NCBI GenBank assembly: GCA_965202585.1
Contig: OZ241826.1
Span: 79,980,001 to 80,044,000 of the forward strand
DNA: 64,000 bases
Direction: 5' to 3'
From: Thalia democratica
Lineage: Eukaryota
The first letter of the stretch is position 1, and the number at the start of each line of letters is the position of its first letter. The notes under the pieces were generated by a model. That model ran no database searches. It was not told the DNA's origin and worked only from the letters and a program-made list of their open reading frames with translations. Of this stretch, positions 8,119 to 50,435 are shown one piece after another. Made by a program: the position numbers and the translations under genes.

Positions 8119-8357
8119 AAAATTGACTAGAAGAAAAAAGAAAGCTACATACAGCTTTTATTATTATTACAGTTGTTATTATGATTTTAAAACGTAACTA
8201 AAGTTTAAATTTTACCTTAAACTCAATCTTAATATTAAAATTTAGTTTTTTTAGCTTTTTAAGTAAAATTTTTGAGTAAAACGTTGTTTTTATTTAAATT
8301 TAGTTGTTTAAATGCTATTTTCTATGACTGTCACATATCTTTTTAGATTTATTTAAG

Positions 8358-17544: not shown

Positions 17545-17819
17545 ATGGGTTCTTCAGCAGTTCCGGGTATTTCTCCCGATTTATCGACAATTTTAAGCCA
17601 ATCAGGTGCTGAGTTCGGGGATTTTTTTTCTCAACCCGACCTTGCCAGTATGTGGATGCTTAACAACCCGGCAGCCATGTTGCCTGGTAACCCGTTTCCT
17701 GGGGGATTTCCGCAAATTCCCTCTAACTTCGGTGGGATGAATGGGGCTAAGCAGCAAAAAGGTGGTGATTTTTCCGGGTACGACCCGCTAAGATTAGGAG
17801 GCCCAAATCAGTTTAACTG
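17545..17819 (+). CDS. Gene A exon 1 (MGSSAVPG...GPNQFN), G/P/F/Q-rich low-complexity N-terminus
   Basis: GC-richer ORF in AT-rich flanks; donor tg|gtgagt at 17820; phase 2 matches the next exon. The start codon is less certain because ttcag/cag at 17557-17560 could be an acceptor. Confidence 0.7.
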
Positions 17820-23800: not shown

Positions 23801-26800
23801 AAATTTTGCTAAAACAAACATTTATACTAAACATTTATAACTTTTCAGGCAAGTCAATTCTGTACGAGCTGGGGGGCAAGCAGAGCTGGATGCACCCCAA
23901 CGAGTTCCAAGCGATAAGCGGGAGAGAGACTGCCAAGGATTGGAAGAGGAGCATTAGACATCACGGGAAGAGTCTGAAAGCTCTCATGTCAAAATCGGTG
24001 ATCATTCATCATCAGAACGAATGCGAATGTGAATGGTGTCTGAAAAACATTGCTTTCCTCGCTCAACAAAACAGGGTGAGACTATTTACTTTGTAGCAGT
24101 CTTAAACCACAATGATCTTTTATTCATTTTAACATAGTATAATATATGTTTATTAACATAAATTTTGTCTTATAAAAAAGTAACAAAAAGACAATGCTTT
24201 CCATACGAATAAAATAAAAGTTTAAAAAATAAAGGATTCTACTTTTAAAAATAAATAAAAAATAAAGAAAAAAACAGCACCAAGGGTCAAATAAGAATGA
24301 TTAAGATTTTAAATTTTGAATTACTCAAGACAATAGATTTGTTTTCTAAATTTTTAAAAGTAAGCAAAAATATCAAACAGACAAGTTCTGCTGAAGATGA
24401 CGTCACAAATAAAATAAGCCATGTTTTCCCTTCCACCATCAACAACCAGCGGGAAGATCATGATGACGTCACTGCATGGCAACCGTTGGTTTCGTTGCCA
24501 AGCAACTTGCCCAGCTCTTCACTGATGGGTTTCGACAACTCGCCGTTGCTAGCCAAAATCAGCGAATCAGAGACGAGAAATTCCGCTTTCACTTGCGTTC
24601 TGCCGTCTAGAAAAATGTTTGTTGTTAATTTTTTCATTTAAATAATTTTTTAATCTTTCCAATCTATATACCTTTTTTATCACTCTTTAATTTAACTTAT
24701 ACATTTGTTATGTATTTTTTCCATGAAATAAATGAATTTAAAATAACTATAACATTAAAAACAAAGTAATTTAGATAAAGTTTTACGTAGTTGAGGGGTA
24801 TGTCTCTAATAACAGAGTTTTTAATCAGAGCTTCTCAGTCGCAAATGCAACGAAAATCTCCATGTTCGATTGATAAAAAAGCTCAAAGTCCTGCAGCAAA
24901 CGGAGATACATTTTCTAGAAAAAGATCACACAACGTTGAACAAAATCAGGTTGGGAGTTTGTCAGATAGAGAAAAAATATGTATACATAAATAATATTTT
25001 TACCAAATTACAACTCTTTTTTTTTGCAGAATATGTTAAACGAAGAAGCAAACGAATTACATCCAATTGTTAACAAAATATCAAAAATTGAAAACGGTTC
25101 GTTTTTTAAGTATTTGAACACACAAAATAAGTAATGAATAATTTTGAAACCTGCATATATTTTAGCACTACATTTAAAATAAAATTTTAGACCAACTATA
25201 TATGCTTAAAGATTTTACAATACTAAAATACAGAATTTTTTAGGCTTTCTGCCGAATTTACACGAAAATTCAATCAACCTCGACTATAAAAAGTAAGTAA
25301 TTTATTTATATTTTATTATATGTAAAATTGCTCACAGTTGCCCTTTAAAAAACAGCAAATTGTTCAAAGTAAAAGTTTCCGTCAACATCTAAGCGCAGAT
25401 AACTCTTTTTTTTAACAAACAGTCGTTTTATTTTTAAATCTAATTTCTTTGTGGTCTTAATTTGTAGAAGCAGACTTTTTTGTTAATGTTTTTGTTCAAG
25501 CCAACTTATTTTGCTATGCGAGCAGCTGTTATTAAAAAGTAATTTTAATAATGTTTTCAAAAAAAGTATTAAGTTGATTTAATTGAAATAATCAAAAATA
25601 GACAGACTTTTTGTAATACTGTATAATTAAATAGTCAATTTGCTGATACTTAGATTTATACTGAAAAAAAAGTTTTAACTTAGCTTAGTAAATTGTTAAA
25701 TACATTTAAAAATTTTAAAAAAAGTTTTTTATTTTTGTTACATATATGTTGTCCAAATATACTGCTAAATAAACATTTTGAATACTTCAATTTACTAATT
25801 TACTAAATTTAAATAGATATTATTTGAGCGGACTAATTTGTAATCACTTTAAGTTTATTACTGGCAAAGCATTATGAGAATAAAAAATTGTTTATTTATA
25901 TCTAGTCATATGTAATTTAAAGTTACAATTTTAGACAAAAAATAATTAAGTCATGTTCTCTTACAACAAGATGCTTTGTTAAACTATCAAGTATTTTTTC
26001 TTACTTATAATGAAATATAAGTTTTTTATAATTGTTTTTATAATGTTTTTTTAATTAAATATTTATTTACAGATTGATGCAGGATCAGTCAAATCTTGTA
26101 AAGAACATGACGGCTGCATTCGGACAATTGGCGCCAAATTTACTTGAAAATATTAAAATAAATTGCAAGTCTCAAGTAGAACAAGAAATGAGACAATCAG
26201 AAGAATTAGAATCTTTTGAATTACGTCAGAAAATCAACTTAAAAAATGTGAAAGACAATGCTGAAATTTTAGAAAAGTAAGCAGTTATGTAGTTATAAAA
26301 ACATTATTTTAAACTTAATTAAATCTTTTTTTTAATTAAAAAACTATCTAAGAAGCTGCGAAGATTGATTTTAATTGAAAACCTATTTTGAATTTGTTAA
26401 AATATCTTTTCAATTATTATCATTAATATTATTAAAAAAATAAATTATTTTAAAGCATGGTTAGTATCAACTGATACGGCTTAAAATTTAACTATAAAGC
26501 TAAATAACATATACTCAATTTTAGGTTCAATATGGCTGTTGAAGCTAACTTGATATCTGTTAAAGCATACAACGTAACACTTTTCAGGTTTAATTTTTTA
26601 ACTTTTATTTTAGCATATCAAACGAGAAAAATGAAACTTTTGTTAAAAAGTTAATACCGAAGATTGTAAAAAGACCAAGTAGCGTTCCTATGTAAGTATT
26701 TTTTGTACAATTCATTTAGTATAAAAATACTTGTATATTAATATAGATATAGTTTAAAAAAACATAAATGCATACTTCGTATCACTTAGATAAAAAAAAA

Positions 26801-27695
26801 TTAAAAAACTTTTAGTTTTCAAAGCTTAAGTGGTAAGAATAATCTCTTCTGCAGTAGTGTATAAAAAAATGTTTTTGTTATACAAAACTCAATATTTTTA
26901 TTTTCAGAAAACTTAAAAAAGAAACAAAAAAGCCGAGAATTTTTCATTCACTCTTTGACTTGTAAGTTAATAGTACGTTAGATATAACTTTATGTATTTA
27001 AAAATGATATAAATTTGTTTTGTTATACAGAAATTCCACTTTCGAAGGCGCTTCTTTTAAGAACTTTAACCTTCAGACCGATAAAACAATGCTTAAAACT
27101 AAACTTGTGTCTCACACTTCATCAAAAAATGCTTCACTGCCGAGTGAGACTAACAACAGGTCATCTTTCATGTCTGCTGACAAAACTGCCATAGAAAGGA
27201 TATTGAAAAATTCTGATGAAATGAGCAAATGGAGTTGTGATAGAGTCGGTCAGTATTTAGACGAAATAGATTTGGGGCAATATAAACAAGTGCGTCAAAT
27301 ATATGTAACTATAAATACACCATTTTGTTTGAACCTTCTTAAGACTATGTATAGTTAAATTTTTACGTAGTAACACATATTTTTACTTCAAATTAAAACT
27401 TTAAAAATAAAATGACTTCAATCGTGTTTAAATTAAAATTTTAAAGCTGTTGTTTGTTTTACAACACGAAACAAAACTACATTTTTTTAAATAGTAACCA
27501 TGACAACAGATCTTTCTTGACAACGGCATCAATGGACACTCCCTCCCGTTCATTAGGGAGGAGTCATGCTTGAGCAGGTTGCAAATGAAACTGGGTCACG
27601 CTCACACCCTCATTTCCTCCGTTCACCGTCACTTGGGGTCGTACTTCTTCTTCCTCGAAGCTCACTTTTCACCTTCCTCACCTCTTGCTATTTAG
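17545..27695 (+). CDS. Gene A: 13-coding-exon SAND-domain + SAM-domain protein (putative transcriptional regulator), ~719 aa. Exons: 17545-17819, 19316-19482, 21730-21966, 23849-24075, 24381-24616, 24829-24949, 25030-25096, 25244-25292, 26073-26276, 26614-26691, 26908-26961, 27031-27289, 27510-27695
   Basis: All introns are GT..AG and phases chain consistently (2,1,1,0,2,0,1,2,2,2,2,0) to 2160 nt ending in TAG. Exons 3-4 give LEVTCGDNNALLYIARLSQGSKG-KSILYELGGKQSWMHPNEFQAISGRETAKDWKRSIRHHGKSL (SAND, KDWK signature). Exons 12-13 give WSCDRVGQYLDEIDLGQYKQ-IFLDNGINGHSLPFIREESCLSRLQMKLGHAHTLISSV (SAM pattern). Exons 9-13 are confirmed by equal-length exons in the paralog. Confidence 0.85.
18380..18640. 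promoter_or_regulatory. Intron-1 conserved element with X-box cluster
   Basis: GTTGCTATGGAAAC (18619-18632), GTTTACATGGTGAC (18560-18573) and several GGCAAC/GTTGC half-sites; homologs at ~31930-32170 and ~44300-44540. Confidence 0.65.
19316..19482 (+). CDS. Gene A exon 2 (NNQLNHHQLVSTQQRSTSAMTSSPELSSP...VVTPNNN), S/T/Q-rich
   Basis: Acceptor cacag|c at 19315, donor a|gtaagt at 19483; phases 2 and 1 fit both neighbours. Confidence 0.75.
20600..21462 (+). promoter_or_regulatory. Putative internal promoter and alternative non-coding first exon in intron 2
   Basis: CpG-rich; TGACGTCA at 20958; X-box GTTGCCAATGGAAAC at 21280-21294; strong donor tcg|gtgagt at 21463; in-frame ATG at 21735 just inside exon 3. 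Confidence 0.55.
21730..21966 (+). CDS. Gene A exon 3, N-terminal half of SAND domain
   Basis: Acceptor ccgcag|at, donor g|gtgggt; WTVNLPKG...FLEVTCGDNNALLYIARLSQGSK. Confidence 0.88.
23849..24075 (+). CDS. Gene A exon 4, SAND core with KDWK motif and HxxxCxCxxC tail
   Basis: Acceptor ttttcag|gc, donor agg|gtgaga; HPNEFQAISGRETAKDWKRSIRHHGKSL...HHQNECECEWC. Confidence 0.92.
24381..24616 (+). CDS. Gene A exon 5 (TSSAEDDVT...AFTCVLPSRK)
   Basis: Acceptor aacag|aca (phase 0), donor at|gtttgt (phase 2); open GC-richer frame. Confidence 0.75.
24829..24949 (+). CDS. Gene A exon 6 (ASQSQMQRKSP...HNVEQNQ)
   Basis: Acceptor aatcag|a (phase 2); weak donor cag|gttggg (phase 0). Confidence 0.6.
25030..25096 (+). 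CDS. Gene A exon 7 (NMLNEEANELHPIVNKISKIEN)
   Basis: Acceptor tttttgcag|aat; donor g|gttcgt chosen because its phase fits exon 8. Confidence 0.55.
25244..25292 (+). CDS. Gene A exon 8 (49 nt; FLPNLHENSINLDYK)
   Basis: Acceptor tttttag|gc, donor aa|gtaagt; bridges phase 1 to phase 2. Confidence 0.6.
26073..26276 (+). CDS. Gene A exon 9 (LMQDQSNLVKNM...AEILE)
   Basis: ttacag|a and aa|gtaagc; a 204-nt homolog is present in the paralog. Confidence 0.85.
26614..26691 (+). CDS. Gene A exon 10 (ISNEKNETFVKKLIPKIVKRPSSVP)
   Basis: ttttag|c and at|gtaagt; 78-nt homolog in the paralog. Confidence 0.8.
26908..26961 (+). CDS. Gene A exon 11 (KLKKETKKPRIFHSLFD), basic NLS-like
   Basis: ttttcag|a and tt|gtaagt; 54-nt homolog in the paralog. 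Confidence 0.8.
27031..27289 (+). CDS. Gene A exon 12, linker and start of SAM domain
   Basis: atacag|a and caa|gtgcgt; ends in MSKWSCDRVGQYLDEIDLGQYKQ. Confidence 0.88.
27494..27507. promoter_or_regulatory. RFX X-box overlapping the SAM-exon splice acceptor
   Basis: GTAACCATGACAAC; the paralogous position reads GTTGTTATGGATAC (49046-49059), also an X-box. Confidence 0.6.
27510..27695 (+). CDS. Gene A terminal exon 13, rest of SAM domain to TAG
   Basis: caacag|atc; IFLDNGINGHSLPFIREESCLSRLQMKLGHAHTLISSVHRHLGSYFFFLEAHFSPSSPLAI*. Confidence 0.88.
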   Translation: MFLDNGINGHSLPFIREESCLSRLQMKLGHAHTLISSVHRHLGSYFFFLEAHFSPSSPLAI

Positions 27696-30600
27696 GGTAA
27701 AACCCGAGATTGAAACTTAACAACTGTGCAAATTAACGTCTCTTTTTGCTTACACGGCTTTACCTTTTTTATTATTTTAGGTTTTTAAAAAACATTTTAC
27801 AGTAACTTTTTGTCAGACCTCAAATTAGGAGAAGAATATTTTTGACCGACGATCTTTAAAAGCAGTTACCTTTTGTGCTCCATGTTCTATTTTTTCTGAC
27901 TAAAAGCATACTTTGAAAAAAAAAAGCATAAGTTTATTAACTTTTTTTTATTACCAGATCGACAACTTTTGGTTTTTCTATGTGCAAAAAATTTATAAGT
28001 CTAAAGTTTGTATGATATTTTACTTCAACATACTAAAAAAAACTTAATTTTTCTACAAATGACTGATTTTCAAACAAGGTTTTGCAATAACATAATTTCA
28101 TACAAAAATTCAATTGTATTTCTACTTTTAACAAATAATATATTAATAGATAATTACTGTAAGGTAATATATTTTTAGTTTTTTAAGCTTTTAATATTTA
28201 AAACAAAATAGTCTTTTATGAACAAATTTTGTGAACATTGGTTAAATTTAAAATTTTTTTTGCCTGTAAAAATTTATGTACTACTAAAACTGTTTTTGTA
28301 TTTTTGAAGAAAAATTTTTATTATAATAAAATTTAAAAAAAATGTGCGTTTTTAGTATTTAGATACAATATATAAATTGCAGAACACAATAATCATTTGC
28401 AGTAGAAACGTCTAATAAAACTCTAAAGTTTCTTTAGAACTTGGGAAATTGTTTTAAAATGCTATTAATACAACAAATTATTTTTAAGTAAAAATTTCAT
28501 AAAATAATAACTGTAATAGTGTTCTTTTATTTTTGTTTAATCTAAGATTAGGTGAACTACTTCAAATTTTCATATAAACCAAACTTTGTTGAGATTATAT
28601 TTACAACTAAAATTTACATATTGCTTTTTTGTTGTGTTATATAGTTTATAATCCTTTTTTATTTTAAATTTAAAAGTTTTAAAAAATAAAAAATATTTAT
28701 TTTTTTAACTTTGTTTATAATAAAACTTCTAATAAATTAATTTTAAAATTATGTTTATGGCACTGAAGTTTAAAGATTATTCAATCTACTTAGAATTTAA
28801 AATTAGATTTAATGGAGAAAGTATAATGACAACGGTAGTGCGGAAATCAATTACTATTTATATACAAAAATTATCTTACAACGAAGCAAATTTTTAAAAA
28901 TAGTTGAACAAAGTCAAACTGCTTAATGAGCACGGATACTTATAAGGCAGTGATTTGAAATTGAAACTGAAGTAAACTTTAAACAAAGTAAACCAACAAT
29001 CTTTTGGGAATTAATTGTACTACTAAGGCTTTTCTGTTATATGTTTGCGGTTTAACTATAACTTGGATCTTAAAGCTTATATTAAATTATTTACAAGGTT
29101 ATTAAGTAAAATTCTTAAGCTTTTAAAACTTGTTTTTATTTTATTTATAATCTCCTCAGAAAAATAATTATACTATAAATTCCTTCAGGCTGATTTTATT
29201 ACACCTTGCTAATTAAAAAAAAAAAAAGTGATTGATTTTTACTGTACGCAAACAAAAAGTTGTAGCTAAATTAACTTTGAAAATTACAAAAGAATTTATA
29301 AATAAGCTTATTAAACGGCGTTAAAAGGTTTAAATTAATACCAACTTTAACAAAAAAAATATTGTTTAATTTATTTTTAACTACATAGCACCAACTTCCA
29401 CCATAGTATAAAAAAAATTCAAACGCTTTTGTAATTGATGTCGAAGTGAAAAGGAAAACTATTTTTCCTGCCTTGTTGCAAGTAACGCTGCATTATTAAA
29501 CCTGGAATTTTTCACTTGCCCTCATTACAGAAAGCCCTCAATATGTTTGCAAACTGACGCATTTGAAGCTAGTTTAGCGAGGATTTTCAATTATTTTCTT
29601 GCCCCAATAAATATTAATTCACTAAAAAGTTTGTATATTGTGTAGTTTAACAACTAAAGTTAAAGCAGCAAGTTATTTAAATTAATCTTAAAAAAAACTC
29701 TTAAATTATATATTAAAAGTTAATTAACATAGCAAGCAATAATCTTTAAAGTTAAAATATGCAATTTTTTCATACTTGCCTACTTTCGTTTTTATGCTTT
29801 GTAGTTGAAGTGTTCGCTAAAATTTGTAAAATTTGAATTATTTCCATGGTTTCCATTTTGTTATTATAAAAATTCGATGTACTTCTATCAGAACAAATGT
29901 TAAGTTTACTAATAAAAAATTCTAATCCACAATTAGTTGAAAACTGATTGATTTTTGTTTTACTGCTTTTAAGGTAAAAGACTGTGTACAAGTTTAAAGC
30001 CTTAAATTTTAAATATATATACTATACTTATTAACTAATTCATATCAGGTTTTGATTTTTTTAAAATAAGCGTATCTAAAAATAATTATTATACTAACAA
30101 TTTAATATTTGTTTCAGAAAATTTTAAAGTCATTAATTAGATACCAATTGAAATGTTAGACTTATGTTGCGTATTTAGCTTCGTTTAAACGAATAAAAAA
30201 GTTAAATTGTCTAAAAAGGAAGTTAAATAAGTTTGAAAAAATAGCCATTTTAAAATGTTTAACAAATCAATAATATTGTAGCAATTTTTAATTTAATTTT
30301 TTTTTTCAATTTACAGCAGCTTCTAGCATGACTAATTTCTAAGACGTTTGCGTTTCAACGAGCAGCGAAAATCAGTTATCTCTCGCGACACCAATAAAAA
30401 ACACCAACGACTTTTTTTGTTGCGGCGGTAAAACAAAAACGTAATTTTTTTCTCCTTTGCATTGAAACTTCTATCTCAAATCTTATTACTTTTCTCTATT
30501 TAGTTAATAGTCAACTTGCTAATAAACAAGAAGGTTGGAATTTAACGTAATTGCAAAAATAAATATCAGATTGATTAAGGGTTGTTGGGACTTGAATGGT

Positions 30601-32703
30601 GGTAATGTAAAAAATGACTTTTTTTAAAACTATGGTATATAAAATAACTAGTTAGGCTTTTTATTAATTGATTGAGCAAAAAGCAATTTTTTGAAGATTT
30701 TTAAAGAAAAATCTTGCCCGAATTTTATACACAAGAATGTTTTTTGATGTATTTGAACCACATAGTTTTTCGTCGACTTTTTAAATTGACTTTTTGCCAC
30801 TTTATTAGAATACATGCTGACAAATTGTCTGAAAAAACCGTAAGCCTTTAAAAACCACATATTTTCTACAGCCCTAAACTTTCGAAAACTTTTAAAACCC
30901 TAGTGTTGAACTATGTCGAGATTTGAAAAAAAAACTAATTTAAAAGGATATTTGTTTCAAACAAGATATGAAAAAAACACAAAAGATAAAAAAAAATATA
31001 TCCCTATTTTCTATTTAAACCTATCTGTTAACGACCTTAATTGCTTCAAGCTCGCTTTTTTATCTGAAAATATCAAATATAAATTTTCACCGCAAATCGT
31101 TTTATGCCACTACGCATTACAAGCAAATTTCTCAGATAAAGAGCTGTTTGCTGATTAATAAACAGTTTTTGAGGCAAGTCAGCTTTTTTGTGGTTTTCGC
31201 TTCCAATGTTGACACAACGCTAGTTTGCGGCTTTAGATTTTAAGAATCCACGGTAAAAACAGTCTTAAACCAAAAGTGTAATTTATTATTACTTTAATAA
31301 TTTACAACTCCTAAGTTTTAATTCGTGTTTTTTGAGATTTTTTAAGTCGCTCATTTTATAGTTTGTTATTTTTTGTGCCGAATTTAAAAAAAAAAATTTT
31401 TTGTTTTACAAATTTGATTAATCTTAGGTTTTTTTTATTTGATTTATTGCAAATTTATGAGGTTTTTGAAATTTAAAATAGTTTTTGAAATTTATCTTTT
31501 ACAGTAAATTATTTTATTTTTTGTTGCAAACATTATTGAAAAACTTGTAAGCATAGTTTTATGTGTAGTTCTGTTTTAAAGGTGTACCAAAAACAAGAAT
31601 GTAATTCTTTTCAACTTTTCTAATCTCTCATTGAAAAGTTTAAATACCTTAGGAGATTCCAAAAAAATTCATACAAATGTAATATAAGTAAAATATATTT
31701 AGCACTATAGAGTCTATTACCAGCAATAGTAAACTGTTTGCTTATTATTTCACCACCAACTTCTCTACAAAGTCTTAATGAATTTGTTTTTATTTTGCTG
31801 ATGTGTATTTTCACACAATATTAAAAGCTTTTCACAGTTTTTAATCCTTAATGTAAAAATTTAATAAATTTTGTCAAAGTTAAAAATTAAAACTTTAGTT
31901 ATATCTCTACAAACGTTTTTGCCCCTCCTACGATTTAGCGGTAATTTTCAGACATCAGTCACCGCCCGTAGACGTCAGTAGTTTTACGGTAATTCAGCCA
32001 ACTAACTTCTACAAAAATGCTTGACAACCTTGTTGCCATGCCACCTTGGTTGCCGCAAAGGTCATCATTGCTTATCGGCTTAATTTGATTGGAGATTAAC
32101 TGGTTCGTAGCTCGTAACCATGGCGACAGAAACTAATCAGCAGCGATATTGTAACCATGTAATACGACTTGTTACTAAGTTAATAGCTTGTATAACCGTA
32201 AATATATTAAACAGTTTTTTACCGACTATTTTGACCTTTTGATCAAATGACCTTTATTTCAGCAATAAAGAATAATTAAACAGTTGAATAGCCTAATTCT
32301 TAACTTACTACTCTCGCTGGTTTTCTTAAAAATGTTTTTATTGTTTTTAAACGAACTGGAAATGAAACAGACTTTTGTACGTGGTTTTAAAGCAAGCTTT
32401 TAGCTTAAACTAAAAGTTATTGCATAATTTTTTAAAGTTTTTAGGTAAAAACAGTAATATTTTGTTTTTTTTTGAGTAGGGTTTTTAATTTTGTACTTTA
32501 GTTTTTATTTTTACTCGACCATAGATTTTATAATAAAGCTCTAAATAATTACATTAAATTTTAGCTTAAGAATACAGTTATTTAATGGAGTTAAAGTATA
32601 ATACAGAAAATATAATTATGTTTTTTTTAATCTAGTAGCTTTTTCACATAAAGTATTTTTCTTTTTTTCATGATATTGCGTGTTAGACTATTCATTGTCG
32701 TAG

Positions 32704-32860
32704 CAACAACCAACTCAATCATCATCTGGTTTCAACGCAACTCACTTCCGGTATGACGTCATAGCAACATATGTCATCACCCCTAACAACAACTTCCGCT
32801 GTCGCTCGTCACTAATCCCCTATTGTTACCAGTAGTAACCGAGTGGAGGTTGTAACACCA
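32704..32860 (+). pseudogene. Dead copy of exon 2 (in-frame TAG at 32762-32764, donor lost)
   Basis: cgtag|c aac aac caa ctc aat cat cat ctg gtt tca acg...atg acg tca TAG. Confidence 0.8.
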
Positions 32861-35800
32861 ATTGTTCTATTTTAACATGTTTTTGGTCAAAATTATTGCT
32901 TTAACTTCAACAAATACTTTATTTAACAGTTTACAATTGAAAAAACTAGATAGTAATAAAATATTTTATGAAAATTGTATCTAAATCTAAAGTTATGATT
33001 TTGCTCACTATAAAAAAAGTATCTTAATTAAACTCAAAATTAATTTCTAATAAATAATGATGACCAGCTCTGCATTTGTTAAAAACATTGAAAAGTACTA
33101 GATATAGAAACAATAGTATGAGTTTAACAAAATTAAGTTTTAGCTTAAGTAATTATATCAAAAAAGTTGAAAAATACAAAAAAGAAAAATTATATTGTTG
33201 CTGACATTAATTGAAAACAAATTCTCTTAAAAGTAAAAAATACTTTTTTCAGTTAGTTATTTCATTTAGAGTAGCAATCATAAAGTCATTTATACAAAAC
33301 AATCTGCTTAAAACATTGCATAAAAAATGTTCTATCTATTTGCTTATCAATCCTTCAAACTGCTACTCTTATCGAATAAAACGGGCGACAAAGAATTTCG
33401 TTGCGAGTACGACATGTCACCGTGTTTACGGTTCAAACTTGAATCTCAACAGCATCTGATTAAAAGGGAGATTAAATGACATTTTCGCCCTACTTAACTA
33501 GCCATGAAAGATACTTCCGTGGAATGAAATTGGTGTTAGTTTTAAATTTTAGAAATATAAAGCTTAAATTTTGCACTTAGCAACTTACAGACTTAAACTA
33601 AAATCATGTTGACGTTTCACCAGCTTAAGTATCGGTATAATCGACCTTTAAAAGTATGTTTAACCTACGAAACTTGTTGCATTTTGTTCAAAGCCTTGCT
33701 ACCATATGTATGAAAGCTGTAAATTAAATTAAAGCTTACGTTATCTCGTAATAATATTATCTACTTGTGTTATTATATAAGATATGTTTCATATTAGCAA
33801 AATAACTGTCAACATTGACAACTTCCAGTGTTCTTATGGATTACGAATGCTTGCAGATAAAAATTGTGCCTCTTTTGACCTCATTATAATGAGTGTTTGA
33901 TGCCAAATACAAACACACAAGACAGAAAGAAGCAAATTTTTTATGAAATTTTATATTGTTTTAGTACTTTGCTAAGACACGACAGGTATTTTTGGTAATA
34001 CACTAAATGCACGTTTTATGTTATATATCGGCTTTAAGGTAAACAAAAATATTTAAAAAAAACAGATAAATTTGTTTCGATTTTTTTACTTTTAAGCTAT
34101 TGACTAGTTATTTTTTGTTTAATTTTTGTGTCTTCGTAAGCTTAACATAGTTGATAAAGACTGTTTGTCTATATTGGATTATTTGGGCAATTCAATTGGC
34201 TCTTCAGGTTGTATTTTATTGAACTAAACTATTTGTAAAAGCGCTTCTTTACTTGTTTGCTGAATAAAGCTTGTTACAAATGATGTTGGATTAAAGCAAA
34301 AAACACTACAACCTTCAAACAACCTTTAAATTTTCATATGCTTCTACGAAGCAATTGTCGGTACACGTTTACTTCTCGTTGTAATTTATCAACTCTGTAA
34401 AATTAAAAGCCGAGCAATTCTGTCTCGTGGGTGAAATGCGTAAAATTTTTAAACACGCCTTTCAAAGTTAAAAGCTAATTGCTAAGAATTTTTTTTTTGT
34501 AATAAGCTTATAAGAATAACTGGCAGCAATTAGCCTTTGTCAGCTGTTTTTAATCGTATTCAGTTGCGAATGAGTTTAAAATAAGATTAATCGAAGAAAT
34601 AATCCAAATAATCTAATTAAACTTTTCAGCTTAACGACGATGGCATCCGCGGCAAGTTTCGCGTCTCGTCGCTTTTTTATTGAGAGCGCAATTTTTAAGT
34701 ACTGTGAGTTTTGCGCATTTTTATTTTATTTTTTAATGATTTAGTTAACATAAATACAACAAAAATAATCAAGTTCAATAAATTTCAGACAGGACTATAC
34801 TTATACTTAAAATAATAAGTGCTGAAAAGGTAAAAAATAAAGTTGTTCTAATATGTATATGTATAAAACAGCTCAAAGTAAATGTTTAGTTTAAACTAAC
34901 CTCAAATGAATGTTCTTTCGAAAAAATAATATTTTAGCAAAGTGAAGCCACGAGTAATGTTAATTAAACCATTTATAAGCATGGCACTGAAAAGCGAATT
35001 GAAATTCACATGGGAAATATGCTTGAACTATCTCTTAGATAGTTGTAATATTTATTTCACACCAAATTTTAACCATTAAAAAATTAATCTAAGTTATGAC
35101 TAAAGGATTAAATTTATTCAAACTCAAACAACTAAATTTACAATTTGTTGTTATCGTAAAGCAGTCCTAAAGTTTTAAATGAGACTTTTGTATTAGTTTT
35201 CAGTATTATATTGTTTGAGTTATTTATTATCGTCAACAGTCCTAACGGTTTTAATGCAACCTTTGAAATTTAATTTTTTCAAAGTCATCTGTAGTCAAAA
35301 AAACTTGAGATTAGACAATGATGTGTGCGGCTTACTAACTGTCGATACTATTTAAAAAAGAGCTTTAAATATGCATTAACTAACCGTAAATGTTTCTTCT
35401 TTTTTTTTCATTAAGCATTACGGATTTTTCTTGTAGTCATTAATAACTTGTAAAAGGAGTAGGCTTTTATCTATATATTGTTGCTTTGTTTCGTTTGTGG
35501 CGAGAATTCTTTTGAGATTCTGCGCTGATTTTGAGTCAAGTGATTTGATTCTAATGAGCTTGCTTTTGTCAAACTTCTACGAAAAGAACATTAGTATAAA
35601 ATAAGTTGTTGTGTTTTGTGAAATGCAAACTTTTCAACTTAATCTTAACAAAACACGTGTTTGTTTCAAAACTAAGTGACTTTAACTTTACCAACAAACG
35701 GTTTTAAACCATTAATAAAATATAAAAAATGTAACATTAGATCTCTAGTTTGTTACTTTTAAATTGATAAAAGGGAAATACTGAAACTCATAAAAGAATA

Positions 35801-38800: not shown

Positions 38801-41800
38801 GTTATGTGTTAAAAAAAATAGTTTTTTATGAATAATTTTTATACCTATTTGATATACACACCTTTTAAATGTTAATTACGACAATATTATTTGCATAATG
38901 AATATCATTTTAATAATAAAGATTACAATTTTTTGTTTTTGTTGAAAAATTCTAACTAAAAAGTCAATTACTAAGATTATATTTCACATTTTAATTATTT
39001 ACCTTAAAAAAAAGTTAAAGTATACTTTTCAATTTAACTGATCAATTACAATTTAATTGAAAACGTTATAAATGCTTGACGATAAAGATAAACAACAAAA
39101 ATAATAAAATAAAGAAGAAAAAATTAAACACTTCAATGGGTCTTGAACAAAACATGAGGTCTGCTTGACGATACAAATAAATTATAAGGCTATTTATTGC
39201 AAGTTTTAATTACTTTGTTTATTTAAGTTGACTTTGCTCAACTATAGAAAAATAAACATCAAAACATCATTAAGTTTAAATAGTTTAAACTGTGGAATAC
39301 TTTAAGCTTCATTCCCATACGTCAAAAAAATAATAATTAGCGATTCAACTGTGTAACAGCCCGAAACACCTTGTAATTGATGTATTTAGAAGCAGATAAT
39401 AAGATGAAAGCCTGCGAGGCCGGCGACGTTTCAAGCTTTGTGTTCGGAAATTAACTTGAAGCTTTTCGACTGTATTCCAGTATTTTTTGCATTAGGATTT
39501 TTCTACAGACTTTTTGTTCAGATTATTTACTTTCTTTCTGACTTAATAGTGAATTAAAATTTTGCATATAATTTATGCAAAATAATTTTTTGTAGCTTAA
39601 AACTTTTTATAATTAGATTTAAAAGTTTTATTAAAAACAAACTAGTTAAACTATAAGTTTAGTGCAAGTTCCTACTACAAAAATATAAGTAAATAAAAAT
39701 TACTAAAGACAAGACTAAAAGTTAAAAGATGGCTATAGTGTTATTAAAACGCAAAATCCCTAAAAGACAGTGAGTATAACAAACCACCTTTGCCAGAAAA
39801 AACCGATGATAATTTGCAGCTTCTTTCTTTTTATGAACCAACGCAAAAACGGCTCTAGTTCAAAACAAAGTCAATTTTTTGCCCATCAATCAAAAAAAAA
39901 AAGACTCTACAGTCCTCACCTAATTTTGTTGCTTCTTTACACTGTTTTTTTATTAAAGAAAACTTTGGTTTAAAACTCAATGTAGTCCATAAAATTTTCA
40001 ATATGTTTCAAACAAATTTGCTGCTATTAGGGTTTTAATGTCTTAATAATTAATTAATAGCATCTTTTAATCGATAATTTAAGTAACATAATTTTGCAAA
40101 ACGAAGAAATTATGTTTTTAAAACTTCTAATGCGTTACTGATATAGTAAGTTCACATCGTCTTGCAAAGTTTGTAACGTATCAGATTAGCACTTTATAAT
40201 TAATATTTTTTTAGTCGATTGTCTTATATATAGATTAAAAACAGTTTCTTGTACTTTAGTTTATTTTTTAGATAAATTATTTGCTTATTAAAACAAATGG
40301 TAATTTGGTTAAATGGAACAGATGGGTCCCTATTTATCAAATGGCTGTGCACATAATATTTTTGTAGACTAATTTATTATTTAAATTAACTTATCTATTT
40401 ATATGGAACTTAAAATTATAACACTTATTTATCCCTATTTCTTTAAACTATTAAATATAGCATCTAGCTAATCTGTTTTAACAATATTTGTTTTACTTAT
40501 CAAAATTGTCTGAGCACAATTTAACTAGTTTACAGTATTCAACAATTTGTAGAACAATTTTATACACAGTTTCACAAAATTTTTAATTCATACAGCTTCG
40601 AATTAAACTGATAATAATTAATTTCTCAAGTACTAAGTATTGTAAATACTACTTCATTAAGAGAGTTAGTAAAATATTTAATTTACTTTTTATAAACAAA
40701 TTTATTAGAATTAATTTATAACGGTGCGAGTTCTGCCTACAACCGTTAAGAAGCAAACTTTTCTAACATACTTTGTGCTATAATACATTATACAACGATG
40801 TTCCAAGTCTTATTTGTGTTTTTTTGTAAAGTTAATTTTTTTTTTTCGAGTTTCAGCATTTCTCATAAACTAATCAACAACTAATAATATTAGTGATCTC
40901 ATTTACATTCTTATTTATTTTTTATTAATTAAATAATAAAACAAAAATTAAACTGTTTGTTTCTAAAGTTAAAGTAACTTAGTTTTGAAACAAACACGTG
41001 GTTTGTTAAGATAAAAAATAGCTAAATTGTTGATTTTAAAGTTTCTAACTACTAAGTTTATACTTATAGTCAGTACATAAAAACAGTATAAAAAACTTTT
41101 AAATTTTAGGACAATTTAAAACAAATAAATATCTTTTAAAATAACAACTTTAAAAGATCATAAAATAAAATTTCGTAAAATTATATGCATAAAAACTTTT
41201 TATCTTTATCTGTAAAAAGTTTGCATTTTACAAAACACAACAACTTATTTTATACTAACGTTCGTTTCGTAACAGTTTGGCAAAATCAAGCTCATTAGAG
41301 TCAAATCTCTTAACTCGAAATCGGCGCAGAATCGCAAAAGAATTCTGGCCGCAAACGAAACAAAGCAACACAAATATATAAAAGCCTTCTCCTTTTTACG
41401 AGTTATTAATGACAAACTAGCAAAAATTGTAATGTCTAAGGTAAAAAAAAGAAAAACTTACATTCAGCTAGTTAACGCATATTTAAAGCTCTTTTTTAGA
41501 ATAGTATCGACAGTTAGTAAGCCGCACACACCATTGCACGATCTCAAATTTCTTTTACTACAGATGACTTAAATATAAATCAATTCTAAAGGTTGTTTTA
41601 AAAGCACTAAGACTGTTGTCAATAATAATTAGAAATTTAAACATTAAAATTAACTAAATCATTAGAACAAAGATAAATAGATAGAAAGGCGCAAAACTCA
41701 CAGTATATAAAAGTTGCGCTTTTCGTAAAAAAAACGTCAAGACGCCAAATATGCCGCGTTTGTTCCGCCATCGTTATTAAGCTGAAAAGTTTAATTAGAT

Positions 41801-43596
41801 TATTTGAATTATTTCTTCGAATAAACTTCTTTTTAAATCTTTCGCAGCTGAATACGATTGAGAACAGCTGACAAAGTCTAAATGCTGCCAGTAATTCTCA
41901 CAAGCTTTTTACATAAAAAAAAAGTTAGCAATTAGATTTTAACTTTGAAAGATGTGTTTGAAAATTTTACGCATTTCATTATTAAGAAAGAATTACTCGG
42001 CTTTTAATTTTACAGTGTTGATAAACTATTACGACAAGTAAACGTGTATCGACAATTGCCTCGTAGAAACATATGAAAATTTTAAGGATTTCCAGAAACT
42101 GAAATTAAATATTTTTGAAAGTACATGACTGTCTTAGAACTTGGCCTTTCTTTCTTTTTTTGCTTTAATCCAACATCATCAGAAAGAAGCTTTAATTGGC
42201 AAACAAGTAAAGAAGCGCTATTACAAATAATTTAGTTCAATAAATACAGTTTTAAAAACAATGGAATTGCCAAAATAATTCAATATAGACATACAGTCTT
42301 GATCAACTATGTTAAGCTTTAGCAGACACAAAAGTTAAATAAAAAAGAATAATTCAACAGCTTAGAAAAAAAAAAATTGAAACAAATATCTCTGTTTTGC
42401 TTTTTTTTAAATATCTTTGTTTGCCTTAAAGCCGACGTACAAAACAAACGAGCATTTAGTATACTATCAAAAGTAACTGACGTTATTTTAGCAAAGTAGT
42501 AAAACAATCTAAAAATTTATAAACAATTTGCTACTCTCTATCCTGTGTGTTGGTATTTGGCATTAAATACGCATAATAATAAGTCAAAAAAGGCATAATT
42601 TTTAACTGGAATCATTCGTAATCCATAAGCACACGTGAAGTTGTCAATGTTTTCAGTTATTTTGTTTACATGAAACGTATCACATAGATAAACATAAGAT
42701 AATATTATTACGAGATAACGTACGCTTTGATTTAATAAACAGCTTCCATACATATGGTAGCATGGTTTTGAACAAAATGAAACAAATTTTGTAGGTTAAA
42801 CATACTTTTTAAGGGCGACCACACCGATACTTAAGCTAATGAAACGCCAACATGTTTTAAGTTTAAGTCTGTAAGTTATCTAATACAAAATGTAAGCTTC
42901 ACATTTATAAAATTTGAAACTAACAACAATTTCATTCTACGGAAATATCTTTCGTAGCTACTTAAATAGGGCGAAGGTGTCATTTAATCACCCTTTTTTT
43001 CAGATGCTGTTAAGATTTGTAAGCAAGTTTGAACCGTAAACACGGTGACATGTTACCCTGGCAACGAAATTCTTTGTCGCCCGTTTTTTCGATCAGGGTG
43101 GCAGTTTGAAGGGTTGATAAGCAAAGAGATAGAAACATTTTTCACGCAATACTTTAAGCAGTATGTTTTGTATAAATTACTTTATGATTGCTACTGTGCA
43201 TGAAATAATTAACTTAAAAAAAGTATTTTCGACTTCTGAATGAATTTGTTTTGAGTTAATGTCAGCAACAATATAACTTTTGTTTTTTGTATTTTTCAAC
43301 TTTAAAAAATAATTATAAAAACTACAATTTAGTTTTATTTAATTCATACTATGGTTCCATCTCTAGTACTTTTCAATGTTTTTAACAAATGCGGCAGAAA
43401 TGGTCATCATCAATTATTAAAAATTTATTATTTTTACTTAATTAAATTTTATTTATAGTAAGCAAAACTTTAGATTTATATACAATTTTCAAAAATATTT
43501 TATGACTATTTATTTTTCAATTGTAAACTGTTAAATAAAGTATTGATGCAAATTAAAGCAATAATTTAGACCAAAAACATGTAAAACTAGAACAAT

Positions 43597-43746
43597 TGGT
43601 GTTATAACCTCCGCTCAGTTACTACTGGTAACAATAGGGGATTAGTGACGAGCGACAACGGAAGTTGTTTTTAGGGGTGATGACATACGTTGCTATGACG
43701 TCATACCGGAAGTGAGTTGCGTTGAAACCAGATGATGATTGAGTTG
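43597..43746 (-). pseudogene. Dead copy of exon 2 in right palindrome arm
   Basis: Reverse complement of 32704-32860 with the same TAG; the 43622-43825 ORF is a shifted-frame by-product. Confidence 0.8.
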
Positions 43747-46700
43747 CTACGACAATAAATAGTCTAACTTGAAATTTCGTGAAAAAAAAAACTTTATGTG
43801 AAAAAACTACTAGATTAAAAAACATATTTTTATTTTATTTATTATACTTTAATAATTGCATTCTAAAGCTAAATCTTAATGTAATAGTTCAAAGCTTTAT
43901 TATAAAATCAATGGTAGAGTAAAAATAAAAAACTAAACTACAAAAGTGAAAACCCTACTCAAAAAAAAATTAAATATTAATGTTTTTACCTAAAAAGTTG
44001 TAAAATTTTAAGCAATAATTTTTAGTTTAAGAAAAAAAGCTTGCTTTGAAACCATGTACAAAAGTATGTTTAAATTTTCAGTTCGTTTAAAAACAATAAA
44101 AATAATTTTAAGAAAACCCGCGAGAGTAATAAGTTAAGAATTAGGCTATTCAACTGTTTAATTGTTCTTTAATTGTTCAAAAAAAAAAGGTTATTTGATC
44201 AAAAGGCCAAAAACGTTTGATTGAAAGGTCAAAAAAGTCGGTAAAAAACTGTTTAACATATTTACACTTATACGAGCTTAAATCTTAGCTACAAGTCGTA
44301 TTACACAATTACAATACCGCTGCTGATTAATTTCTGTCGCCATGGTTACGCGCTAAAGACAAACTAATCTCTAATAAAATTAAGCCGATAAGCGATGATG
44401 ACCTTTGCGGCAACCAAGGTGGCATGGCAACAAGGTTGTCAAGCATTTTCGTAGAAGTTAATTGGTTGAATTACCGGAAAACTACCGACGTCTACGAGCG
44501 GTGACTGATGTCTGAAAACTACCGCTAAATTGTAGGAGGGGCCAAAACGAATGTAAAAATATGACCAAATTTTCAATTTTTAATTTTGAAAAAACTTACT
44601 AAATTTTTATATTAACGTTTAAAAACTGTGAAAACCTCTTAACATTTGTTTTAAAAATCACTTTGGCAAAATAAAAACATATTCATTAACGCACTTAAGA
44701 CTTTGTCAAATAGTAAGCAAATAGTTTGCAATTGCTGTTAATTAGAATCAACAGTGCTAAATATATTTTACTTATATTACATTTGTATGAAATATTTTGG
44801 AATCTCCTTAGATATTAAAACTTTTCAATAAGAGACTAGAGAAATTAAAAATAATTATGTTCTAGTTTTTGGTAGACCTTTTAAACAGAACTACACGTAA
44901 AACTATGCTTACAAGTATTTTTATAATGATTGCAACAAATAAAAAGTAATTTACTGTGAAAGATAAAAAGCTTTTTAAATTTAAAAAACTTCATAAAATT
45001 GCAGTAAATCAAAATAAAAAACCTGAGATTAATCAAACTTTGTTATACAAAAAGTTTTTTTTTGTGAATTTTGCACAAAAACAAATTCAAACTATAAAAC
45101 GACCGACTTAAAACACCCCAAAAAACACAAATTAAAACTTAGAAGTTATAAATTATTGAAGTTTTAATAAATTACCATTTTGGTTTAAGACTGTTTTTAC
45201 CGTGGGTTTGTAAAAAGAAAAGCCGAAAATTAGCGATGTGTCAACATTGTAAGTGAAAACCACAAAAAAGCTGACTTGCCTCGAAAGCTGTTTATTAATC
45301 AGCAAACAGCTCTTTGGCAGAGAAATTAGTTTGTAATGCGTAGTGGCATAAAACGACTGTAGTGAAAATTTATGTTTGATATTTTTCAGATATAAAAGCG
45401 AGCTTGAATCATTCAACGTCGTTAAAAGATAGGTTTAATAAGAGAAAAAAAGATATATATTTATATCTGTTGTTTCTTGTTTTTTTGTATGTTGTTTGAA
45501 ACAAAATTAATTTAAAACTGTTTTTTCAATCTTGACACAGTTAAACACTAGGGTTTTAAAGGTTTTTAAAAGCTTAGAGCTGTAAAAAGTATGTGGTTTT
45601 TAAAGGTTTACGGTTTTTTTCAGACAGTTTGTTAGTATACATTCTATGAAAAGGGCAAAAAGGCAATTAAAGAAAGTCGAAGTAAGACCATTGGTTCAAA
45701 CACATCAAAAAACATTCCATGTCCATAAAGTTCAAAGAAAATTTTTCTTTAAAAAACTTAAATAATTTTAAAACTTTTGCTTCTTGCTCAAATACAAAGC
45801 TTAACTTAATACAAAGTTATTTTATATAGCAACATTTCGAAAAAAAGTCATTTCTAAACATTACCACCATTCAAACACACGAAGTCCTAACAACCCTTAA
45901 TCAATCTGGTCTTTTTTGCAATTGTATCAAACTTCAAACTTTTGTTTGTTAGCAAGCTGACTATTTACAAAACAGATAAAAGTATTGGGATTCGAGAAAG
46001 AAGTTTCAATGCAAAGGGGAAACTTATTACGTTTTTGTTTTACCGCATCAATAAAAAAATTGTTGGTGTTTTTTATTGGTGTTGCGAAAGATAATTGATT
46101 TTCGCTGCTCGTTGAAACGCCAACGTCTTAGAAATTAGTTATGCTAGAAGCTGCAGTAAATTAAAAATAAATTTAGATATGAAAAATTTGCTATGATATT
46201 ATTGGTTTTTAAATATTTTGAAATGGCTATTTTGTAAACTCATTTAACTTCTTTTCTAAACAACTTAACTTTTTTATTTCTTTAAACGAAGCTAAATACG
46301 CTACATGAGCCTAAAGCTTCAATTGTTTTGTTTCAATAATTAATGGCCTTAAAGTTTTATGAATCAAGTTTTTCATTTTTTATCTAATAATTATCTTTAG
46401 ATTTGCTTATTTCAAAAAGAAAACAAATCCTGATATGAATTAGTTAATAAGTATAGTATAATTTTTTTAAAGTTAAAGCTTTAAAAAAATACACAATCTT
46501 TTACCACAAAAGCAGTTAAACAAAACTTTTTCAATAATTAACTGTCTGTGGACTTGAAATTTTTATTAGAATAATTTAACATTTAGTTTGATAAAAGTGC
46601 ATTGAACTTTTGTACTAACAAAGAATTTTTGGCACCGTGAAAATAATTCAAATTTTAGCAAACACTTCAACTACAAAAAATTAAAATTGAATGCAGCCGA

Positions 46701-48851
46701 GTATGAAAAAATGTCATTTTTTAACTTTAAAAACTATTGTTTGGTATGTTAACAAAGTTTTAATGTTTTATTTAAGAATTTTTATTTAGATTAGTTTTAA
46801 ATAATTTGCTGCTTTGACTTTAGTAGTTTAATTACACAATATAGAAATTTAAGTAAATTTATATTTATTAGAGTAAAAAAATAATTAAAAATCCTCGCCC
46901 AAACAAGCTGCAATAGCGTCAGTTAGCAAACATATTGAGGGCTTCCTACAATGAGGGCAACTAAAAAATTCGAGGGTCAATAATGCAGCGTTATTTGCGA
47001 CAAGGCAGGAAATGGTGATGTCAAGCAAAAAGTGAAGATAATTTTCCTTTCACTTCGACATCAACTACAAAAGGATGTGAAGTTTTTATTATCTGTGGTG
47101 GAAGTTGGTGGTATGTTATTATTGATAAATAAACAATTGGTTTTTTTGTTTAAGTTGGTATTTATGTAACCACGTTTAATAAACTTGTTTATAAATTCTT
47201 TTGTAATTTTCAACGTTAATTTAGCTACTACTTTTGATTTGCGTGCAGTAAAAACAATATTATTTCAAATAAAATTCGCCAGGTGTAATGAAATCAGCCT
47301 CCCGGGAATTTGTAGTATAATTATTTTTTTGAGGAGAAATTTATTCAAAGATGAACCGTCCGCTTATATTAGTATAAATATATATAATAAAAACGTTCTT
47401 TTAAAGCTTAAGAGCTTTACACAAAAACCTTGTAAATAGTTTAATTTAGATTTCTTAGATGAGCCAAGTTATAGTTAAACCGCAAACATATAACAGAAAG
47501 GCCATTAGTAGAATAGAATACAATACCCAAAAGATTGTTGGTTTACTTTGTTTAAAGTTTACTTCGGTTTAAATTTCAAATTACTGCCTTATAAGTATCT
47601 GTGCTCATTAAGCAGTTCGACTTTGTTTAACAATTTTTTAAAATTTGCTTCGTTGTAAGATTATATTTGTATATAAATAGTAATTGATTTCTGCACTACC
47701 GTTGTCATCATTACTTTCTCCATTAAATTTAACTTTAAGGTCTAAGTAGATTGAACTATCTTTAAACTTCACTATAGTAAACAAAATATAAATTTTTATT
47801 TTTTAGAAGGTTTATATAAAGAAAGTTAAACAAATAAATATTTCTTTTGTTTATTTAAAACTTTGAAAATAAAAAAAAGGAATACGAACTATATAAAACT
47901 AGAAAGAAGCAAGATGTAAATTTTTGTAATTAAAATAATATCAATAAAGTTTGCTTTATAACAAAATTTGAAGTGGTTCACCTAATCTTAGATAAAACAG
48001 AAACAAAGGAACACTCTTAAACTATAATTTTATGCAAATTTTACTTTTAAATAATTTATTGTTTTAATAGTGTTTAACTTTTCTTTCTTAAGTTTTAAAG
48101 ACTTTTATTAGACGTTTCTACTGCAAACAACTGTTGTGTATTGCAATTTATTTATTGTATCTAAACACAAAAAACACATAAACTTTTTTATAAATTCTAA
48201 TCATACCCATAATTTTTCTTCAAAAATTAGAAAAACAGTTTTAGTAGTACATAAACTTTTAAGGCCAAAAAAATGTAAAATTTAACTAAAGGCTTTAACA
48301 GAATTTATTCGTAAAAGACTGTTTTGTTTTCAATATTAAAAGCTTATTAAATTAAAATACTAACTTAATTTAATTATCTATTAATATATCATTTTATAAT
48401 TGAAGAAAAAAAAAATTGTATGAAATTATGTTATTGCAAATCTTAGCTAATGTTTGAAAATCAGTCATTAGTACAAAAATAAAGTTTTTTTAGTCTGTTA
48501 AAATAAAACCTCATACTAACTTTAGACTTATAAATTAATTTTTGACACATAGAATAACTAAAAGAAGTCGATCTGGTAATAAAAAAAGTCTATAAACTTT
48601 TGTATTTTTTTACAAACATGCTTTTACTCAGAAAAAATAGAACAAAGAGCACACAAGGTAACTGCTTTTAAAACAACAGAAAAAGGACTTTCAGTCAAAA
48701 ATATTCTTCTGCTAATTTGAGATGTGACAAAAAGTTACTGTAAAGTGTTTTTTTTAAACCTCAAAAAAAAGGTAAACTTTAGAAGCGCCGTGTGAGAAAA
48801 TAGAGACGTTATATTAAAATTTGGACACTAATCAAGTTTCATTGCTGGGTT

Positions 48852-50358
48852 TTACCCTGAATTGTTAAATGGTGAGGAAGGTGAATGTTGAGATTCGAGG
48901 ATGAAGAAGTACGACCCCAAGTGACGGTGAACGGAGGAAACGAGGGTGTGAGCGTGACCCAGTTTCATTTGCAACATGCCCAAGCAAGATTCTTCGGTAA
49001 CTAACGGGAGTGAATAGCCATTGATGCCATTGTCAAGGAAGATCTGTTGTTATGGATACAATTGCATAACTTTGTTTCGGGTTGTAAAACAAACAACAGC
49101 TTTAAACTTTTAATTTCAACAAGATTAAAGTCTTTTTACTTTTAAAGTTTTAATTTTAAGTAAAAACCTTTTTGAATACGTTAAAATTTAATTTTACATA
49201 CTGTTAAGAAGTTTTAAAGCAAAATGGTGGATTTAAAAAAAATGTTTTCAACTTACTTGTTTATATTGCCCCAAATCAATTTCGTCTAAATACTGACCAA
49301 CTCTTTCACAACTCCATTTGCTCATTTCATCGGATTTTTTCAATATTGTTCCTATAATAACTTTGTCAGCAGACATGAAGGATGTCCTGTTGTTAGTTTC
49401 ACCCAACAATGAAGCGTTTTTTGTTGAAGTTTGAGACACGGGTTCAGTTTTATGCATTGTTTTATCGGTTTGAAGGTTACAGTTCTTAAAAGAAGCGCCT
49501 TCTAAAGTGGAATTTCTGTATAACAAAACAATTTTAGTTCATTTAAAAATATAAAAAATATATCTAACGTACTATAAACTTACAAGTCAAAGAGTGAACA
49601 AGAAATTCTTGGTTTTTTTGTCTCTTCTTTAAGTTTTCTGAAAATAAAAATTGTAGAGTTTTGTATCACAAAAACAATTTTTTTACACATTACTGCAGAA
49701 GAAAACTTTTTTTTACCTCATCAGCTTTACAAACCTAAGATTTTATAACATTTTTTAACTAAGTGATACGCTTTATGCATTTTTATTTTATTAAACTATA
49801 TCTTTAATAATATTTAAGTATAAACCTAACTTAATTGTACAAAAAATACTTACATAGGAACGCTACTTGGTCTTATTACGTTCTTCTGGATTGATTTTTT
49901 AACTACACCATCATTAATCTCGCTTGATTTTCTAGAAAAATGTAAAAAATTAAACCTGAAAATCATTACGTTGTATGCTTTAAGAGCTATCAAGTTAACT
50001 TTAAAAGATAAATTTGAGTATATTTTTTCAATGTTTATAAAAGCTAAGTATTTTTTAATTATAATCAATTTTTGCAGCTTTTTAAGTTTATTATCTTAAA
50101 AAAAAGATTAAATTAAGCTGAAAATAAAGTTTTTATAGCTACAAAACTGCTTACTTTTCTGAAATGTCAGCATGGTCTTTAACATCATTTGAGTTATTTT
50201 TCAGATTTTGTTCAAAGGATTTTAGTTCTTCTGATTGGTAAATTTCTTCTTCTACTTTAGGCTTGCCGTTTACTTCAATATTTTCAAGTAAATTTGGTGT
50301 AAATTGTCCGAATGCAGCTGCCATGTTCTTTACAAGATTAGACTGATCTAGCACCAAT
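48852..50358 (-). CDS. Gene B: 3' part (exons 9-13) of a SAND-SAM paralog, 5'-truncated in this copy. Exons: 50358-50155, 49931-49854, 49637-49584, 49515-49257, 49043-48852
   Basis: All five exons are open with canonical splice sites. Lengths 204/78/54/259 nt equal gene A exons 9-12. The SAM exon reads IFLDNGINGYSLPLVTEESCLGMLQMKLGHAHTLVSSVHRHLGSYFFILESQHSPSSPFNNSG* with synonymous changes versus A. Homology to A stops at 50428, so exons 1-8 are absent here. Confidence 0.8.
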
Positions 50359-50435
50359 CTGTAAGTAAGAAGTTAATCGAAGAAAACATTTTAAGTATGA
50401 AAAAATACTTGATGGTTAAACAAAGCATATATATA

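Follow-up and report, generated by a model that had tools for sequence, protein, structure and literature searches.

The DNA analysed here, called the window below, is a stretch of 64,000 nucleotides (nt) of Thalia democratica (contig OZ241826.1 of assembly GCA_965202585.1, positions 79,980,001-80,044,000 of an 802-Mb genome). It holds gene A, which is predicted to encode a SAMD11-like protein with a SAND and a SAM domain and ends within one arm of a large imperfect palindrome. The 3' end of a convergent paralog, gene B, lies on the other arm. A preliminary description of the window regarded this structure as an old fold-back duplication of about 24.5 kb with two convergent SAND-SAM paralogs, and proposed that RNA read through from either gene might form a long hairpin. 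Coordinates are window positions unless stated otherwise. The A+T share of the window is 72% and it contains no N.

Results

Structure of the palindrome

Self-comparison of the window by BLAST gave two colinear, inverted arms around a non-coding spacer, in four matching pieces (Table 1), and a separate repeat search agreed. The inverted match is far above chance level. The arms of about 11 kb, the spacer of about 2 kb and the centre near 38.3 kb that had been described were thus confirmed, and the self-comparison found colinear arms and not mere scattered repeats. In a global alignment the arms were 84.5% identical over aligned columns and 74.8% identical with gaps counted, which fits the earlier estimate by eye of about 75-85%. 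The alignment contained 1,351 gap columns, and the longest exact run was 58 nt. Two indels were larger: the A arm has about 420 nt more at 34.8-35.2 kb, and the B arm about 200 nt more at 41.0-41.2 kb.

Table 1 Features of the locus, in window positions
Feature	Position	Strand or orientation	Remarks	Evidence
Gene A	17,545-27,695	+	SAMD11-like (SAND+SAM), 9 recognised coding exons	Open reading frames, splice sites, 7-paralog alignments, Pfam, blastp
Gene A exon 1	17,545-17,819	+
Gene A exon 2	19,316-19,482	+
Gene A exon 3	21,730-21,966	+	First half of SAND
Gene A exon 4	23,849-24,075	+	Rest of SAND, including KDWK
Gene A exon 5	24,381-24,616	+
Gene A exon 6	24,829-24,949	+	3' end unsure
Gene A exon 7	26,073-26,276	+
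Gene A exon 8	27,031-27,289	+	Start of SAM
Gene A exon 9	27,510-27,695	+	Rest of SAM and stop
B1	48,852-50,358	-	5'-truncated copy of gene B, SAM intact, without SAND exons	Paralog alignment, splice sites
B1 exon 7	50,358-50,155	-
B1 exon 8	49,515-49,257	-
B1 exon 9	49,043-48,852	-
Left arm (A arm)	26,038-37,295	+		Self-BLAST, global alignment
Spacer	37,296-39,328		2,033 bp, non-coding, centre about 38,312	Self-BLAST
Right arm (B1 arm)	39,329-50,394	-	Inverted copy of left arm	Self-BLAST, repeat search, global alignment
Inverted match, piece 1	26,038-26,381 / 50,394-50,052	Inverted	82%	Self-BLAST
Inverted match, piece 2	26,536-34,748 / 50,007-41,650	Inverted	8.5 kb, 81%, 7,887 bits	Self-BLAST
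Inverted match, piece 3	35,205-35,634 / 41,650-41,215	Inverted	83%	Self-BLAST
Inverted match, piece 4	35,639-37,295 / 41,015-39,329	Inverted	78%	Self-BLAST
Tandem copy 1	33,473-50,431	+	Inner 3.8 kb of A arm, spacer, whole B arm	Self-BLAST, flank comparison
Junction filler	50,432-50,435	+	TATA, 4 nt, 73 nt upstream of B1 exon 7
Tandem copy 2	50,436-64,000	+	To 67,398 beyond the window; complete B2 (-) follows
A-B homology beyond copy 2	26,012-22,782 / 67,354-70,592	Inverted	86%
A-B homology beyond copy 2	22,644-19,779 / 70,723-73,588	Inverted	89%
A-B homology beyond copy 2	19,508-17,490 / 73,588-75,598	Inverted	90%
A-B homology beyond copy 2	16,715-14,783 / 76,498-78,420	Inverted	84%
Exon 2 relic from a decayed family member	32,702-32,781	+	Only gene-related content of the non-coding arm
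SAM-only scrap	7,868-8,146	-	Resembles exons 8-9, no other family exons nearby
SAM-only scrap	143.5-143.8 kb	+	Mirror fragment beyond the window

Gene A

The exons of gene A are all bordered by AG/GT, and its stop is at a position common to all paralogs. Against the SAND family of Pfam (PF01342), exon 4 scored 53.3 bits and exon 3 scored 19.8 bits. The SAM domain is split across exons 8 and 9, and its single-exon Pfam scores were for this reason sub-threshold (18-19 bits). When the exons were joined, the model matched P0030, a protein of another species, by blastp in both the SAND (E 2e-40) and the SAM domain (E 1e-22), and exons 7-9 of the joined model aligned with residues 620-700, the Pfam-verified SAM of that protein. 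Proteins of Ciona, Clavelina, sea urchin and amphioxus were also aligned over both domains. The comparison proteins were Pfam-confirmed as SAND+SAM, and some of them are named SAMD11-like by NCBI.

Exon order and reading phases are kept in seven paralogs, with the exception of the phase between exons 6 and 7 (24,940-24,965; 26,066-26,075), which is out of register if the strongest donor, CAG|GTTGGG, is used. The phase closes with a weaker but conserved donor lying 11 nt further downstream, TT|GTYAGA, which would create a stop in the paralog P2; an alternative frame of exon 6 is also open in A and in the complete gene B (B2, below). Either the weaker GTYAGA donor is used or a small exon was missed. 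When a SAND exon was searched with HMMER against 1.84 billion representative sequences, the sole close match was a 141-amino-acid product of a 905-nt metagenome contig, which includes translated intron, and thus no protein from annotation or from transcripts is on record for this species.

At the end of the SAM exon (27,578-27,650, exon 9 of gene A), about 70 nt form a core that hardly varies among eight copies, not even at synonymous sites or in the divergent copy P3. The core of SAND exon 3 is likewise near-invariant among copies at the nucleotide level. This suggests either conversion among the exons or an overlapping constraint at the nucleotide level.

Truncated and complete copies of gene B

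Exons 7-9 are located on each arm, those of gene A on one and those of its convergent paralog on the other, and in both their frames are open, their splice sites are AG/GT and, as had been described, the SAM sequence is intact. Within the window no second set of SAND exons was found besides that of gene A, and therefore the B copy inside the palindrome, B1, is SAM-only. Its 5' edge coincides with the junction of a tandem duplication; this junction falls within intron 6 of the complete gene, 73 nt upstream of exon 7. From its sequence, the paralog B of the palindrome thus appears to be a promoter-less fragment. The complete gene, B2, lies outside the window on the minus strand, with exon 1 at 75,544 and exon 9 near 65.8 kb. 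Of the two convergent SAND-SAM paralogs assigned to the palindrome, the convergent 3' ends with intact SAM hold, but the B copy there is without SAND and the whole gene is 17 kb further out. The exons of B1 and B2 differ by two non-synonymous and no synonymous changes, too few to interpret.

A probable young tandem duplication

For comparison beyond the window, 200 kb of flanking sequence were added and the resulting 264 kb were compared with themselves. Already within the window, self-BLAST showed a direct repeat, 33,473-47,032 matching 50,436-64,000 at 99.2% and continuing past the window edge. In full, there are two tandem copies of 16.96 kb (33,473-50,431 and 50,436-67,398), which are 99.21% identical over 16,983 aligned nt and differ by 94 substitutions (0.55%) and 24 indels, mostly of 1 nt. 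The right edge of the palindrome as first described (50,428) is the junction of this duplication. In the assembly the two copies are adjacent, in the same direction and separated by a discrete junction, as expected of a tandem segmental duplication, with indirect support from reads: 50,436, the first base of copy 2, is exactly where a Logan unitig of run X1 begins, and a start is expected there if a repeat boundary has two different left flanks.

It is conceivable that the second copy is an assembly artefact in which two haplotypes were placed side by side, so that the whole gene A would face the whole gene B and B1 would not exist. The divergence between the copies, in both substitutions and small indels, is within the allelic range for a marine invertebrate, and a Logan contig of run X1 at 51,270 shows only the form of copy 1 (an ACA insertion). 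However, Logan contigs pop bubbles, and a missing variant carries little weight. The junction is clean, has a 4-nt filler and contains neither a gap nor an N, which is typical of genuine tandem duplications, and the start of the unitig at 50,436 is also as two left flanks predict. We consider an artefact unlikely and the tandem duplication probably real. Were the second copy nevertheless an artefact, B1 would vanish and the conclusion on the old whole-gene palindrome, given below, would stand.

When JGI metagenome contigs were scanned for the sequence immediately to the right of the junction, none matched. In run X3, a joint of opposite strands at 54,257/56,299 was considered and rejected; it is at the last base of the compared stretch and is probably an artefact of the similarity of the arms.

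The original palindrome

Beyond the second tandem copy the inverted homology to A resumes and continues through the gene (Table 1), and the original arms were therefore about 20-22 kb long, each with a whole gene. The 24.5-kb palindrome is a truncated view of a larger mosaic of segmental duplications.

Content and divergence of the arms

Of each arm, 1.6 kb consists of exons 7-9 and their introns. The rest of about 9.6 kb (27,696-37,295), about 85% of the arm, is non-coding and contains no long open reading frame, and no Rfam family was matched over 17-64 kb. The region from 27.7 to 37.3 kb is non-coding downstream DNA with relics of older, dead copies. The best-conserved block of the arms (32,711-32,944 versus 43,746-43,513, 94%) includes the longest exact run and overlaps the exon 2 relic.

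The Jukes-Cantor distance of the non-coding arm was 0.17, compared to 0.20-0.22 in introns 7 and 8, and the synonymous divergence (dS) of exons 7-9 was 0.29. As the non-coding arm diverges like introns, the arms seem to drift approximately neutrally and their complementarity is not maintained. Between A and B2, the ratio of non-synonymous to synonymous divergence (dN/dS) was 0.27 over exons 1-6 (421 codons) and 0.42 over exons 7-9 (207 codons), exon lengths and splice sites were unchanged, and both full genes were intact. Selection thus acts on the proteins and not on the complementarity of the arms. An old duplication preserved by selection on its genes, as the preliminary description had it, is in accordance with these values as far as the age of the inverted duplication (arm divergence about 15-19%) and the upkeep of its coding parts are concerned; it does not extend to the arms as such, which are mostly non-coding and evolve at the intron rate.

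The SAMD11-like cluster

Matches to the SAND exon occurred at ten places between 79.91 and 80.19 Mb of this chromosome, and there were more elsewhere. At least seven paralogs, with all nine exons, were present within the 264 kb read: P1 (+), P2 (-), P3 (+), A (+), B2 (-), P6 (-) and P7 (-). P6, about 102.7 kb from the window start on the minus strand, has an in-frame TAG in SAND exon 3, where the others have TAC, but is intact in its remaining exons and splice sites.

A second complete convergent palindrome, colinear with A/B, is formed by P1 and P2; its arms extend over at least 18 kb and are 83% identical, and its centre measures 4 kb. When trees were built from the downstream region and from the gene body, they were star-like and did not place A nearer to B than to other copies, which gives no support to a simple fold-back of A into B. 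Tracts of high identity (93-99%) were not found between A and B, unlike between A and P1, where 29.5-30.2 kb of A is 93-97% identical, and between A and the P1/P2 centre. In the latter case 35,639-38,478, that is, the inner A arm and the left 1.2 kb of the spacer, matched the P1/P2 centre (79,922,095-79,924,969 in chromosome coordinates, inverted) at 94%, locally 95-99%, in surroundings of 82-85%; the values range from 92 to 99% over 35.6-38.5 kb and from 92 to 94% in the spacer part. This suggests recent non-allelic conversion, or a patch duplication, between the two palindrome centres. Judged by such sequence comparisons, the locus appears to be a gene cluster in birth-and-death evolution, in which non-allelic conversion happens occasionally, and not a maintained palindrome.

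Discussion

The palindrome probably goes back to an old inverted segmental duplication in a SAMD11-like cluster, which was later cut by a young tandem duplication and whose arms are neutral. The cluster would have grown by repeated segmental duplication in both orientations, and one such event would have left the whole gene A (+) facing the whole gene B (-) over a spacer of 2 kb, with arms of about 20-22 kb. We infer that these arms then drifted at a roughly neutral rate to their present 84.5% identity, without arm-to-arm homogenisation, their coding exons being kept under purifying selection. Much later, a tandem duplication of 16.96 kb with breakpoints at 33,473 and in the B intron, 73 nt upstream of exon 7, would have duplicated the spacer together with the innermost A arm on one side of it and the 3' part of B on the other. 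As a consequence a promoter-less B fragment with exons 7-9 would have been placed beside A, and the intact B shifted by 17 kb, out of the window. The palindrome itself is probably without function and arose as a by-product while the gene family evolved by birth and death.

Several observations weigh against this interpretation. Blocks of the arms near 28.9, 31.1-31.2, 31.9-32.3 and 32.8 kb are 88-95% identical in most paralogs, and such well-conserved blocks could be functional non-coding elements. The star-like tree gives no order of the duplications. No listed Logan contig bridges 50,431/50,436, and the duplication was not confirmed by independent reads, which were available as contigs only; this lack of a bridge is also what an assembly artefact would give. 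Finally, the stretch occurs in public runs from two organism labels and two marine metagenomes, all of them contig sets that resemble DNA, and in no RNA run, which leaves room for transcription across the arms.

In its domain order, an N-terminal SAND and a C-terminal SAM, the family resembles SAMD11 and SAMD11-like proteins. In vertebrates SAMD11 is a PRC1-associated co-repressor that acts in rod photoreceptors. The same arrangement of the two domains is described for human SAMD11 (PMC11450717), and association of SAMD11 with PRC1 components has been reported (PMC7892874). Unlike SAMD11, which occurs in one or a few copies, there are at least ten SAND exon matches in about 300 kb here and seven complete copies in 264 kb, and the predicted protein of about 640 amino acids has lineage-specific N-terminal and linker exons.

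The locus is also like other birth-and-death tandem clusters, having copies at 78-93% identity in both orientations, a pseudogene (P6), fragments (at 7.9-8.1 kb, and B1), relic exons and conversion patches. We see no essential difference from such clusters, the recurring tail-to-tail pair being a local peculiarity. The ampliconic palindromes of mammalian sex chromosomes likewise have gene-bearing inverted arms of tens of kb and a short unique spacer, and their arms are held more than 99.9% identical by arm-to-arm gene conversion. Unlike these, the arms described here are only 84.5% identical, with many indels and no tracts of high identity, and do not qualify as a homogenised palindrome. The palindrome is a real but ordinary structure.

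It could be asked whether B1 is a new gene, the SAM-only product of which joins or poisons the SAM polymers of the full-length members. Its exons 7-9 are intact with good splice sites, and a natural isoform that lacks SAND and retains SAM exists for human SAMD11 (PMC11450717), a protein which self-associates and binds Samd7 and Phc2 (PMC7892874). However, B1 is very young (0.55% divergence), and its intactness is for this reason uninformative; the only two coding differences from B2 are both non-synonymous, and no first exon, promoter or transcript of B1 is known. We regard such a new gene as highly unlikely.

The tail-to-tail arrangement occurs twice in the cluster, in A/B and in P1/P2, and its recurrence might be non-accidental if double-stranded RNA (dsRNA) or small RNAs from convergent read-through regulated the dose of the family, or if B1 were expressed as a decoy for SAM polymerisation. 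A purpose of this kind seems very improbable to us.

According to the preliminary description, read-through transcripts would cross the centre and fold into a long imperfect hairpin, giving endogenous small interfering RNA (endo-siRNA) or edited dsRNA that cross-regulates the paralogs. The arms would indeed pair on one RNA, as they share 56 exact runs of at least 21 nt (1,553 nt in total), 11 of them within the interval of exons 7-9 with introns 7 and 8 (26,073-27,695), and the convergent layout repeated in the cluster is also in favour of the idea. On geometry alone it is nevertheless unlikely a priori. The two stops, at 27,695 and 48,852, are 21.2 kb apart and the centre is 10.6 kb from either, so that transcription from each gene would need to go on for over 10 kb downstream of the stop, through many AATAAA signals, the first of which follow the two stops at +630 and +558 nt. 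In the known hairpin RNA (hpRNA) and endo-siRNA loci, such as the hpRNA genes of Drosophila, inverted repeats can likewise fold if transcribed as one RNA, and these loci are short, dedicated, well-paired transcription units with abundant small RNAs. Unlike them, the arms here are 11 kb long, mostly intergenic and poorly paired. With the intron-like rate and many indels of arms whose complementarity is not maintained, a B copy beside A that has neither 5' exons nor a known promoter, and only 20-nt scraps from run X6, we find regulation by a hairpin RNA very improbable.

The expansion of the gene family is more notable than the palindrome, as a normally low-copy, Polycomb-associated SAND+SAM regulator is present here in many copies, most of them under purifying selection. 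The young 17-kb duplication, in turn, can be dated and illustrates the way in which truncated copies with a single domain arise in such clusters.

A minor element links the spacer to the genes. A 96-nt stretch of intron 2 (21,311-21,406, about 2.4 kb upstream of exon 4 of gene A, which encodes the C-terminal part of SAND) is copied in the spacer at 38,540-38,635 with 92.7% identity. The predicted RNA folds of the spacer element and of its intronic parent were no better than those of shuffled sequences (z -0.04 to +0.44). The element recurs near every paralog at 84-94% identity and contains ATTGG, the reverse of CCAAT; judging by its sequence, it may be a piece of a promoter or enhancer.

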